Origin: Rebecca billardiae RCC1528
Lineage: Eukaryota; Protista; Haptophyta
Assembly (NCBI GenBank): GCA_965240325.2
Contig: OZ251227.1
Location: 496,001-560,000 of the forward strand
DNA length: 64,000 nt
Direction of reading: 5' to 3'
Shown: positions 51,299 to 52,816 of the stretch, piece after piece
Layout of the letters: the number at the start of each line of letters is the position of its first letter
Position numbering within the stretch: the first letter of the stretch is position 1
The notes under the pieces: model-generated
Seen by the model: the letters and a program-made list of their open reading frames with translations, nothing else
What the model was told of the DNA's origin: nothing
Databases searched by the model: none
Made by a program: the position numbers and the translations under genes

Positions 51299-52816
51299 CT
51301 AGGAGTAGATGGCGCCCTCGATCCGGTGCGCGTCGCGCGCCCCTTCGATTGGCGCCGGGAAGTCCGGTCGAAGCACGCTGCACGCCGTGCCCACTGCCGC
51401 AAGCACGGCGTCGAGCGCGTCGCCGCCGGCCTGCTCGGCCAGCTGGCCGGCGAGCGCCTCGGAGCACACGACACGCACTGTGTCGCGGGCCACCGCGGCG
51501 CAGCCACCGACCTCGAAGCCCGTCGCACGTGCGTGCGCGAGTACGCGGCGCCGTGCCGCAGCCTGCGCCGCGCCAGCGCCCTTGTAGCTCTCGCGCAGCG
51601 CGTGCCGCTTGAGCAAGCTCGCGGGGCACGCCTCGACAAGCCGCAGCGGCGCGGCCGATGACGCACGGCCGTGCATCATCATCGGCAGCACACTGAGGGA
51701 GGCGGGGGCGCGCTGGAGGAGAGGCAGGCAGAGGAGCGCGATGGCCGACCACGTCTGCCGATACAGCCGCAGGTTGGTCGGCGCGAATGGCGCGCGCGCC
51801 TCGACGTCGCACAGGCGCTTGAGCTCGCGTGTGGGGCGCGCGCCGTCTGCCGGCGCGCCGGCGGCCGGTGCGCGGTCGCCCTGAGCGCTCGCGGTTGCGG
51901 CCTTGCTCCACGTGAGGAGCGCGTCTGCGTCAGACCACAGCGCGGTCGACGCGCGGCACAGCGCCAGCCACTCCGCCCCGCCTCCGCCCGGCTCGTCTGC
52001 GCCGCCCGTGCCGGACACCTCAGCCAGCGCAGAGCGCACGAGGGCAGATGGCAGCGAGAGCGGCGCGTCCACGCCCACGGTCGTGGTCGTCGGCGCGGCG
52101 CGGGCGGCAGGCTCGGCGCCGCCTGCGTCCTGCTCGACGAGGCGCAGCAGCTCGTCCACCACGGCCGACGTTGCACCTGCGAGCCCGCTCGCCTCGCCAC
52201 CGGCGGAGAGCGCCGCGGCGGACGAGACGCGCTCCACGGAGAGCTCCCAGCAGCTTGCAGCGGCACCGGCGCGGCCGCCGTCGCCTGCTGGCGTGCGCGC
52301 CCGGGCGAGCGTGCCCACGGCCATGTAGATGAGCTTGCCAGCATTCTGCGCACCCGACCAATCGAGCCCGACGATGCGCTGGGTCTCCACAGCCCTCGAG
52401 GCCGCGACCGCGCCCTTGGCGCGCTTCGCCGGCAGCGGCAATGCGTGTTGGTGCGCCGCCTCGACTGCTGGGGCCTGCGCCACGCGCAGATCAAATATGC
52501 AGCCCTTCGAGACCAGGCCTCTCGGACCGTCGAAGTCAACGCCCTCTGCGGCGAGCAGCTTGCGCTTCCGCGCCAGCTCCGGGGCCTCAGCCTGCCAGAC
52601 GCCGTTGAAGCCGCCCAGCGAGCGGTCGCTCGCGACTACCCGGTGGCACGGGACTGCCGGTGCAAACGGGTTGCGCCGGAGCGCACCCCCCACGGCACGC
52701 GGGCAGGAGTCAATGGCCTTGGCGAGCGAGCCGTACGTGCTGACGCGACCCTTGGGGATGCGGCTGCATGCGTCGTACACGCGCCGGTCGAACTCGGAGA
52801 CCTTGCCCTTCACCAT
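51299..52816 (-). CDS. Fusion: O6-alkylguanine-DNA alkyltransferase C-terminal domain + DUF429 predicted nuclease (RNase H-like fold)
   Basis: RIPKGRVSTYGSLA..PRAVGGALRRNP..VPCHRVV..LGGF..KRKLLAAEGV; then IVGLDWSGA, VGVDAPLSLP, LKRLCD, LVEACPA, GDALDAVLAA, IEGAIY. One uninterrupted ORF. Confidence 0.85.
   Translation of the reverse strand: MVKGKVSEFDRRVYDACSRIPKGRVSTYGSLAKAIDSCPRAVGGALRRNPFAPAVPCHRVVASDRSLGGFNGVWQAEAPELARKRKLLAAEGVDFDGPRGLVSKGCIFDLRVAQAPAVEAAHQHALPLPAKRAKGAVAASRAVETQRIVGLDWSGAQNAGKLIYMAVGTLARARTPAGDGGRAGAAASCWELSVERVSSAAALSAGGEASGLAGATSAVVDELLRLVEQDAGGAEPAARAAPTTTTVGVDAPLSLPSALVRSALAEVSGTGGADEPGGGGAEWLALCRASTALWSDADALLTWSKAATASAQGDRAPAAGAPADGARPTRELKRLCDVEARAPFAPTNLRLYRQTWSAIALLCLPLLQRAPASLSVLPMMMHGRASSAAPLRLVEACPASLLKRHALRESYKGAGAAQAAARRRVLAHARATGFEVGGCAAVARDTVRVVCSEALAGQLAEQAGGDALDAVLAAVGTACSVLRPDFPAPIEGARDAHRIEGAIYS

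Follow-up and report, generated by a model that had tools for sequence, protein, structure and literature searches.

A single-exon haptophyte gene joining an alkyltransferase domain to a DUF429 predicted nuclease: a candidate two-activity DNA-damage enzyme

Here, we describe a gene of Rebecca billardiae RCC1528 in which a short alkyltransferase (AGT) and a divergent DUF429 domain, predicted to be a nuclease, are encoded in one reading frame of 505 amino acids. The gene lies in a 64,000-nucleotide stretch of contig OZ251227.1 (positions 496,001 to 560,000; hereafter the window), and its features are collected in Table 1. We propose, with about even confidence, that the protein is a tethered two-activity DNA-damage enzyme in which an AGT and a nuclease would both act at alkylation damage. 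We found no published description of the AGT-DUF429 architecture, in keeping with the earlier note, which knew of none in eukaryotes; the pairing is rare and conserved, and through it a family of nucleases about which little is understood becomes connected with DNA damage.

The fusion is a real nuclear gene of a GC-rich alga. On the minus strand, a single open reading frame (ORF) runs from ATG to TAG, with an in-frame stop 22 codons 5' of Met1, and its coding sequence aligns end to end with three eukaryote-like metagenomic proteins (P0001, P0002, and P0004). In every 50-codon block GC3 (0.82 to 0.90) lies above GC2 (0.52 to 0.70), a periodicity that is unbroken across the inter-domain linker and that the same composition test detected in neither flank. 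Direct reading and this uniform coding signal together bear out the intronless ORF that had been claimed from the letters alone. The gene is overlapped on the antisense strand by ORFs 423 and 286 aa long; long ORFs arise frequently by chance in DNA of 70% GC, and the true frame is therefore set by homology and codon periodicity, not by ORF length. The direct repeat flanking the gene was rejected as a dispersed element within the window, where only two copies are complete and a third match is a partial one of 33 nt.

Table 1. Positions in the window of the fusion gene, its domains and predicted catalytic residues, and the flanking repeat.
Feature	Position	Strand	Remarks
Complete single-exon CDS	51299..52816	-	505 aa plus TAG stop (51299-51301)
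AGT C-terminal-type domain, aa 8-93	52538..52795	-	PF01035, TIGR00589, PDB AGTs, Foldseek
PCHRV active-site motif, aa 56-60	52637..52651	-	Read from DNA; Cys57 codon TGC 52646-52648
Inter-domain linker, aa 111-144	52385..52486	-	pLDDT 41-55
Basic NLS-like PAKRAK, aa 129-134	52415-52432	-	Sequence motif
Divergent DUF429 domain, RuvC-like RNase H fold, aa 145-505	51302..52384	-	Homology and model; four or five eukaryote-clade loop insertions
Asp152, predicted metal ligand	52361..52363	-	End of strand beta-1 (GxDxSG); at least 90% conserved, n=143
Asp250, predicted metal ligand	52067..52069	-	End of strand beta-4 (GVDAP); invariant, n=143
Glu395	51632..51634	-	Strand beta-5 (EACPAS); invariant
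Asp466-x-x-Asp469 (GDALDA)	51410..51421	-	D469 invariant, D466 at least 90%; start of last long helix (466-481)
Glu500 (EGxxY)	51317..51319	-	Near C-terminus; family-invariant
Right copy of ~200-235-bp direct repeat	52929..53135	+	Immediately upstream of fusion-gene start; belonging to gene uncertain
Left copy of ~200-235-bp direct repeat	49438..49674	+	Downstream of neighbouring 393-aa gene; relation to fusion gene uncertain

We considered whether a stop between adjacent AGT and DUF429 genes had been lost fortuitously, joining the two, or whether the ORF is a decaying pseudogene. Pavlovales sp. CCMP2436 lends itself to such a reading, since its AGT and DUF429 parts, collinear and in the same order, are assigned by the annotation to separate genes, and two in-frame stops divide them (between about 7095 and 7326 of L012), as do two loci (L094 and L095) that carry a standalone eukaryote-like DUF429. 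However, the fusion ORF is uninterrupted in four lineages at about 50% sequence divergence, with both domains and the linker kept; P0002 is identical on contigs of four samples; and the continuous GC3 signal through the linker and the intact catalytic residues of both domains likewise make an artefact very improbable.

The N-terminal half is a short single-domain AGT with a complete catalytic set, predicted from its sequence to carry out alkyl transfer. The proposed HMMER search matched PF01035 over the entire model (E 1.5e-26; 92.4 bits versus a cutoff of 27; positions 1-81 of 81), TIGR00589 matched as well (71 bits versus 46; E 5e-20), and a sequence search recovered solved AGTs in the PDB at E 4e-15. 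Foldseek aligned the modeled half with solved AGTs, DNA-bound structures among them, and with an ATL at a probability of 1.00 and an rmsd of about 2 Å. The residues that the earlier note had reported intact are so, namely, Tyr28 (TYG, 27-29), the Arg finger Arg40 (PRAVGG; RAVG, 40-43), and Cys57 in PCHRV (56-60), and they are joined by the Asn49 hinge in RRNP, by His58 beside Cys57, and by Glu91 in LLAAEG. Arg40 and Asn49 are spaced 17 and 8 residues from Cys57, as in the human protein, and from the motif alignment we take Cys57, His58, and Glu91 to correspond to human C145, H146, and E172. The Cys, His, and Glu of the catalytic network are common to P0001, P0002, P0004, and the Pavlovales exon, and PCHRV is kept in all fusion homologs and in that exon. 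ATLs lack the acceptor Cys and pass lesions to a nuclease-based pathway; given the intact Cys in PCHRV, the half is an AGT, and an ATL identity was ruled out. The N-terminal AGT domain (PF02870) is absent, the protein beginning seven residues before the C-domain, which is typical of the short algal/fungal subgroup, and that domain is dispensable for activity (PMC10779285). As a point against the two-activity reading, selection on the gene might be explained by its AGT half without the other.

A disordered, basic, NLS-like linker of about 35 residues is modeled between the AGT and DUF429 modules. The full-length model has a pLDDT of 88 with the linker disordered, residues 115-129 being modeled as such, and the NLS-like PAKRAK that had been quoted was located at residues 129-134. 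P0001, P0002, and P0003 have linkers with basic stretches of a similar kind.

The assignment of the C-terminal half to DUF429, the family of PF04250 and COG2410/4328/4923, is less direct. The earlier note had called it a complete DUF429 domain, which stands with respect to homology to PF04250 proteins, acidic residues, and fold, but not with respect to a direct hit, as the PF04250 HMM matched neither the whole protein nor the C-half alone at E values up to 10. An NCBIfam scan of the C-half also returned no match. Insertions specific to the eukaryote clade probably break the PF04250 match. The assignment instead follows from phmmer homology to PF04250-carrying proteins (89-97% of the C-half covered, at E values between 2e-21 and 1e-7), from the subfamily, 99 of whose 143 members match PF04250 and none any other family, from P0003, a protein of the eukaryote clade above the PF04250 threshold (26.2 bits versus 23), and from the match in structure to a DUF429 cluster model (TM 0.94; rmsd 1.7 Å over 264 residues). 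In a profile search, the subfamily comprised 2,202 representatives, counted at 50% identity and spread over bacteria and archaea, of which 560 had E values of 1e-30 or less. No PDB sequence matched the C-half profile, which indicates that no DUF429 structure has been solved. For the RuvC families there was no Pfam or PDB sequence match to the C-half, EndoV (PF04493) had no match in the fusion protein, and RNase HII (PF01351) gave no Pfam or NCBIfam match, with no RNase H2 among the best 50 structural matches.

On the model, the C-half is a predicted nuclease whose DUF429 domain takes up an RNase H fold of the RuvC-like kind. This description agrees with Majorek et al. (2014), who assigned DUF429 to clade D of the RNase H-like proteins, predicted it to be a nuclease, and gave it an RNase H-like core in which the first and the fourth strand carry conserved acidic residues. 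The fold call rests on VIA-align of the single-domain model (pLDDT 90.3, pTM 0.92), which supersedes a Foldseek search of the full-length model against the PDB. The nearest solved folds, at moderate Z, were Ydc2 (Z 9.7), Thermus thermophilus RuvC (Z 8.7; 155 of its 158 residues aligned), and Pseudomonas aeruginosa RuvC (Z 8.3), with rmsd values of 3.3-3.4 Å over 145-166 residues, followed by TEFM, poxvirus and MOC1 resolvases, Cas9/Cas12 RuvC domains, terminase nucleases, and RuvX; nearly all of the best 40 matches were RuvC-type domains. The acidic residues conserved in the family (D152, D250, E395, D466, D469, and E500) are intact, and the remaining quoted motifs were all found (GLDWSG, 150-155; GVDAP, 248-252; VEACP, 394-398; DALDA, 466-470; EGAIY, 500-504). 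We take the D466/D469 pair to be topologically equivalent to D138/D141 of RuvC. Structure prediction, the check that had been suggested, thus returned the expected fold for both halves.

Alternatively, the DUF429 half might be a nucleotide-binding, regulatory, or oligomerization module, leaving the protein a short AGT with an appendage. DUF429 is elsewhere fused or operon-linked to CinA/PncC and, in the literature, to NUDIX, RelA/SpoT, and HMP kinase partners; the weak C-domain matches of the full-length Foldseek search included ASKHA kinases and NTPDases; and the isolated domains of RelZ, the Mycobacterium smegmatis protein that is the sole DUF429 protein with biochemistry, are inactive, the full-length protein being hexameric. 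We nevertheless consider a non-nuclease role quite unlikely. The family-invariant acidic residues are all retained at canonical RNase H/RuvC positions, almost all of the best 40 VIA-align matches are RuvC-type nuclease domains, the many Arg and Lys residues conserved across the 143 subfamily sequences fit backbone binding, and the RNase H activity of RelZ is abolished by active-site mutation independently of its synthetase. RelZ cleaves RNA:DNA hybrids through its DUF429 domain, so that the earlier description of DUF429 as uncharacterized does not wholly hold.

The fusion recurs in P0001, P0002, and P0004 at 45-49% identity. P0003 was rejected as a standalone eukaryote-type gene, its frame being open to the contig edge. 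A fused or operon-like AGT was found in none of 144 prokaryotic and metagenomic DUF429 loci, and in the single locus with an AGT nearby, that gene lies about 3 kb off on the other strand; one such case is roughly what chance would give. A scan of viral contigs returned no relatives of the fusion, leaving a giant-virus origin unsupported. The architecture is rare: it is known from three other fused proteins, and from none of the 144 loci or viral contigs. DUF429 sequences of the eukaryote type group together as one clade (SH-aLRT 97-99), and the DUF429 half appears to be of bacterial origin; loci of the bacterial subfamily are linked to CinA and an SRPBCC gene. The AGT half is of the algal short type, and its tree (125 columns, poorly resolved) groups the fusion AGTs with Pavlovales and brown-algal sequences at weak support. 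The fusion would be a case of a bacterial-type gene that entered an algal lineage and then fused to a host repair gene.

We propose that the AGT module would bind duplex DNA and flip out O6-alkylguanine, the alkyl group moving to Cys57 in a single-turnover reaction, and that the nuclease tethered to it would thereby be concentrated where chromatin is alkylated. A putative Mg2+/Mn2+-dependent endonuclease, the DUF429 module would cut a secondary nucleic-acid intermediate arising at alkylation damage. The likeliest such intermediate, by analogy with RelZ, is an RNA:DNA hybrid or R-loop where transcription has stalled, though a branched or stalled-fork intermediate may also serve, as the RuvC-like fold would allow. 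Given that RelZ cleaves RNA:DNA hybrids, we rate these no lower as a probable substrate than DNA that contains lesions. The two catalytic centers would work independently, as in the archaeal AGT-EndoV.

A more direct coupling, the sense-and-cut idea of the earlier note, can also be envisaged, in which the AGT recognizes O6-alkylguanine and the RuvC-like nuclease nicks the damaged strand nearby so that excision repair begins, especially at adducts too bulky for transfer or met after Cys57 is spent, amounting to a built-in ATL-to-NER hand-off or EndoV-type incision. The architecture parallels the AGT-EndoV and ATL-EndoV proteins, for which PMC10779285 relays a proposed XPG-like nuclease role; the closest folds are DNA-cutting RuvC-type enzymes; and the flexible linker of the model would let the nuclease cut no more than a few nm away from the lesion that the AGT has bound. 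Against this, the same account has the two AGT-EndoV activities target different lesions with no relay between them, the one characterized DUF429 enzyme cuts RNA:DNA hybrids, the Cys is intact in every homolog, which speaks for direct transfer and against ATL-like flagging, and the bacterial subfamily keeps company with CinA and SRPBCC genes rather than with AGTs. We regard lesion-directed nicking as unlikely on balance, both as a general route and at bulky or late-met adducts.

Irreversible alkyl transfer to the Cys destabilizes and opens AGTs. This suggests a speculative variant in which alkylation of Cys57 switches on or releases the RuvC-like domain as a single-use nuclease that cuts only at lesions met, which we consider improbable; its target would be DNA or an RNA:DNA hybrid, cut as often as lesions occur, and that part is equally doubtful. 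Were it true, eukaryotes would have in this protein an equivalent of the Ada methylation switch, one whose output is a nuclease, and DUF429 proteins generally would be assigned to DNA-damage processing. The two-activity enzyme that we favor also bears on the family, which holds more than 2,200 subfamily representatives at 50% identity and one partly characterized member. Eukaryotic fusion to a well-understood lesion-binding enzyme is a "Rosetta stone" that points DUF429 at damaged DNA and supplies concrete substrates and point mutants for testing it.

Among known systems, the AGT half is closest to the short algal, fungal, and bacterial MGMT proteins (among them those of Pavlovales sp. CCMP2436, P0163, Tetraselmis, and Laminaria; 55-67% identical), which contain the Cys, share the length class of about 105-130 aa, and lack the N-terminal domain, but stand alone, whereas the fusion adds 395 residues after the AGT. 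Schizosaccharomyces pombe Atl1 and Escherichia coli YbaZ likewise consist of one AGT C-domain fold (by-target Foldseek TM 0.68-0.71). The DUF429 half shares with the RuvC-family resolvases (RuvC, Ydc2/Cce1, MOC1, and poxvirus A22), its best structural matches at Z 7-9.7, acidic residues on beta-1 and beta-4 together with a D-x-x-D motif within the C-terminal helix, but differs from them by a helical insertion of about 130 residues between beta-4 and beta-5. In bacterial CinA-DUF429 operons and fusions (P0027; L007, L014, and others), a DUF429 of the same subfamily (30-35% identity) is coupled to a "competence/damage-inducible" partner, which is CinA/PncC and not an AGT. The bacterial partners are nucleotide-metabolism rather than DNA-repair domains, which counts against a damage role.

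RelZ (MS_RHII-RSD, RnhD, MSMEG_5849) also combines a PF04250 domain with a second enzymatic domain, but there DUF429 is N-terminal and the C-terminal partner is a (p)ppGpp synthetase. It carries out the hydrolysis of RNA:DNA hybrids and of R-loops, and its expression is UV induced; its substrate specificity is loosely defined, and deletion of rnhD gives no UV or peroxide phenotype. The RNase HII label given to its DUF429 domain describes activity, not family membership, and that domain may be only distantly related to the subfamily of the fusion, to which it is likened here by description.

EndoV is also RNase H-like in fold, and the nearest parallel is AGT-EndoV, a bifunctional repair enzyme. 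AGTendoV of Ferroplasma acidarmanus and the archaeal ATL-EndoV fusions (Kanugula et al. 2005 PNAS, as relayed by PMC10779285) resemble our protein, known from sequence and model, in carrying an N-terminal AGT C-domain without the usual N-domain, fused to a metal-dependent endonuclease (a predicted one here). The precedent invoked in the earlier note is sound, and there are published precedents of AGT C-domain fusions that keep activity. The host of AGT-EndoV is an archaeon whereas ours is a eukaryotic alga, and the partner here is DUF429, of the RuvC-like clade D, and not EndoV (PF04493), so that the AGT-DUF429 architecture arose independently. It would be a second AGT-nuclease fusion of separate evolutionary origin, one for which we found no description in a eukaryote, and would lend weight to the view that it is useful to couple direct reversal with strand incision; the two architectures are analogous, not homologous.

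Every motif quoted in the earlier note was found, on reading the DNA of the window, in the AGT-DUF429 open reading frame (ORF) and where the note had placed it. The window DNA is ~70% GC, so that long ORFs are expected by chance and length by itself is no proof of a gene; antisense ORFs of 423 and 286 aa in the window's ORF listing overlap the fusion ORF. Each 50-codon block of the fusion ORF, including the linker and Ala-rich loops, has a GC3 of 0.82-0.90 and a GC2 of 0.52-0.70, a periodicity looked for and not found in either flank, and a stop codon lies in frame 22 codons 5' of Met1. 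The true frame is set by this codon periodicity, the upstream stop and strong homologs of both halves, and we regard a gene-model artefact, the last-ranked explanation, as highly improbable.

The N-terminal half is an alkyltransferase domain, as the earlier note had claimed. Residues 8-93 cover the whole PF01035 model (92.4 bits, E 1.5e-26), TIGR00589 also matches, and solved AGTs are recovered by sequence (1mgt, E 4e-15). Foldseek, run on an AlphaFold model of the whole protein (mean pLDDT 88.1, pTM 0.77), aligns this half with AGTs of archaea, mycobacteria and human and with S. pombe Atl1 at a probability of 1.00 and an rmsd of ~2 A. The catalytic and DNA-binding set is complete (Tyr28, the Arg40 finger, the Asn49 hinge, Pro56-Cys57-His58-Arg59 and Glu91), and because the acceptor Cys57 is intact, the domain is assigned to AGT rather than ATL. 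The fusion protein has no AGT N-terminal domain, which is dispensable for activity, and fusions of the C-domain only are known (2023 AGT review, PMC10779285). The closest relatives of this half are single-domain, Cys-containing "MGMT family" proteins of 104-170 aa from algae, fungi and some bacteria, headed by a protein of the haptophyte Pavlovales sp. CCMP2436 (67% identity); a tree of the ~100-residue domain, poorly resolved, places the fusion AGTs with Pavlovales and brown-algal proteins.

Assignment of the C-terminal half to DUF429 held by homology but not by a direct Pfam match, as PF04250 matched neither the whole protein nor the C-half alone. Residues 136-505 match PF04250-bearing bacterial proteins of 266-272 aa (E 2e-21 to 1e-7; ~30% identity across 89-97% of the query), and an exhaustive profile search returned 2,202 representatives, 560 at E<=1e-30, nearly all single-domain and 260-300 aa long. 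PF04250, and no second family, was matched by 99 of 143 subfamily members, and P0003, a fragment from the eukaryote-type clade, passes the Pfam threshold. The C-domain, modelled alone (pLDDT 90.3, pTM 0.92), fits the model of a bacterial DUF429 cluster with an rmsd of 1.7 A and a TM of 0.94 (by target) across 264 residues; no solved DUF429 structure was found in a search of PDB sequences. An all-against-representatives structural search with this model returned RuvC-type enzymes nearly exclusively: Ydc2 was best (Z 9.7), with RuvC of T. thermophilus (Z 8.7, 155/158 residues aligned) and P. aeruginosa (Z 8.3), followed by TEFM, poxvirus and chloroplast MOC1 resolvases, Cas12/Cas9 RuvC domains, terminase nucleases, Tex/Spt6 and RuvX. 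Majorek et al. (2014) had assigned DUF429 to RNase H-like clade D, with nuclease activity predicted from conserved acidic residues in strands 1 and 4, and the matches of our model agree with this placement. The 143-sequence alignment of the subfamily gives as invariant or nearly so D152 (end of beta-1), D250 (end of beta-4), E395 (beta-5), D466-x-x-D469 (start of the last long helix) and E500, with conserved basic residues R334, R350, R353, K412 and R422 and an NLRLYRQT motif, all of which are intact in the window protein. Its excess length over bacterial DUF429 proteins lies in four or five low-confidence loop insertions at positions common to other eukaryote-type sequences. Modelling shows the C-half as a predicted RuvC-type fold with the canonical acidic constellation.

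The same architecture occurs end to end, at 45-49% identity, in the metagenomic eukaryote-like homologs P0001 (511 aa), P0002 (502 aa) and P0004 (466 aa), each of which keeps PCHRV, all nuclease motifs and a variable linker with a basic patch. These are single ORFs on contigs of 62-72% GC with eukaryote-like neighbors (AP2, mRNA triphosphatase, pantoate ligase), and P0002 is identical on contigs of four samples; the frame of the fragment P0003 is open up to the contig edge. Searching 5.8 billion proteins with a full-length profile added no fusion to these, nor did scans of viral contigs or of 64 JGI metagenome loci. Pavlovales sp. CCMP2436 has three AGT exons and, beyond them on that strand and without a change of frame, DUF429-like exons (VGVDWSGAKDAGKHIY; GVDAPL), after which the assembly has a gap. 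Two genes are annotated there, with two stops and ~230 bp between them, either as a tandem pair or because an intron went unrecognized; the two may have been split wrongly from a single gene. At this locus (L012), an N-run at 9415-11944 conceals the 3' part. The fusion is genuine and conserved, and it is rare and restricted by lineage.

DUF429 domains of the eukaryote type group as a single clade (SH-aLRT 99 and 97), on a long stem amid bacterial sequences, mainly of Alphaproteobacteria, Chloroflexota and Planctomycetota. Their sister (support 95) is a standalone protein of metagenomic contigs L094 and L095, with a basic N-terminus (MVAKRPRG) and eukaryote-like low-complexity inserts including a Pro/Glu/Gln-rich loop, which may be the unfused eukaryotic form; the next sister, on a long branch, is L044, from an unclassified bacterial MAG. 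The simplest reading, which we infer from a tree without a root, is that a DUF429 gene of bacterial origin passed into an algal lineage, stood alone, and later joined a short host AGT gene, with the CCMP2436 arrangement as a possible intermediate.

Among 109 genes flanking 80 bacterial DUF429 loci, 17 encode CinA, as a rule adjoining DUF429 on its upstream side and overlapping it by 4 bp, and 21 are SRPBCC (polyketide-cyclase-like) genes in convergent orientation; the 447-aa protein P0027 exemplifies a true CinA-DUF429 fusion. That the family's partners belong to nucleotide metabolism favors a non-nuclease role for DUF429, ranked third and improbable. AGT families were absent from the 25 most frequent flanking families, and a local AGT HMM found AGT within the flanks of 1 of 144 loci, about chance expectation; the association with AGT thus arose within the eukaryote clade. 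The lone case, at L044, is probably coincidence. Alphaproteobacteria (L007/L014 8001-8810 and many of L015-L093) conserve a pgpA-cinA-DUF429 order with the 4-bp overlap and the convergent SRPBCC gene downstream, a linkage for which no description was found in the literature searched. Two other proteins differ in layout: P0029 (405 aa) has an unannotated 137-aa extension ahead of DUF429, and P0300 (479 aa) joins an AGT domain to a remainder without assigned identity.

Within the window, copies of a direct repeat (74-nt core at 96% identity, plus indels) flank exactly two minus-strand genes, the fusion gene and a 393-aa ORF; the window holds no further copies. The repeat could represent promoter or UTR sequence that was duplicated, or mark where a segment was inserted. 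The 393-aa ORF has no Pfam match, and a protein-language-model search related it, at scores of 0.90-0.91, to uncharacterized eukaryotic clusters of diatom, haptophyte and chlorophyte origin.

Coordinates of features in the window and at related loci
Feature	Position	Strand	Remark
AGT-DUF429 ORF	51299-52816	-	ATG to TAG, 505 aa; read from window DNA
Cys57 codon	52646-52648	-	TGC; read from DNA
393-aa neighbor ORF	49869-51050	-	
566-aa upstream ORF	53935-55635	+	divergent; RanBP2-type zinc finger, leucine-rich repeats (LRR_4, LRR_8)
Direct repeat, left copy	49438-49674		~200-235 bp
Direct repeat, right copy	52929-53135		~200-235 bp; immediately upstream of AGT-DUF429 start
Direct repeat, partial third copy	49312-49344		
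Two identical 41-nt direct repeats	48802-48842 and 48889-48929		87 bp apart
CCMP2436 AGT gene (105 aa) and next gene (141 aa)	L012 6001-8592 (MU631592.1)		collinear and in frame with window fusion
Standalone 355-aa DUF429	L094 1302-2369; L095 73-1140		GC-rich, eukaryote-like metagenomic contigs
Lone prokaryotic AGT near DUF429	L044 3599-4552 and 7445-8038	+ and -	~3 kb apart, opposite strand

Sequence and model give two intact predicted catalytic modules connected by a disordered, basic linker. We propose, as the first-ranked reading and at about an even chance, that their activities are independent: the AGT module would repair O6-alkylguanine by single-turnover transfer to Cys57, thereby localizing the nuclease to alkylated chromatin, and the DUF429 module would act as a metal-dependent endonuclease on a secondary intermediate, with RNA:DNA hybrids/R-loops, or branched structures, at lesion-stalled polymerases ranked first. 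Lesion-directed nicking of DNA, the "sense-and-cut" idea of the earlier note, ranks second and seems unlikely. That alkylation of Cys57 licenses the nuclease is decidedly improbable.

DUF429 had been called uncharacterized, which is outdated in one respect, as M. smegmatis MSMEG_5849 (MS_RHII-RSD, RelZ, RnhD) has an assigned activity, cleavage of RNA:DNA hybrids. In this protein an N-terminal DUF429 is fused to a (p)ppGpp synthetase, and activity is confined to the full-length hexamer; according to Shuman's group, the substrates for which it is specific are not defined, and deleting rnhD gives no phenotype with UV or peroxide. RelZ, as described, carries a DUF429 domain like the window protein and has the synthetase as partner in place of AGT. 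The 2023 AGT review (PMC10779285) lists C. elegans AGT-2 with its histone-like tail, and archaeal AGT-EndoV and ATL-EndoV, in which the AGT C-domain is fused to an endonuclease, whereas the partner here is a RuvC-like DUF429 and the organism a eukaryote. Literature searches turned up no published account of an AGT fused to a RuvC-like DUF429, nor of a fusion of this sort in any eukaryote, as the earlier note had suggested. The concept of an AGT-nuclease fusion has archaeal precedent, and the AGT-DUF429 pairing itself appears to be new.
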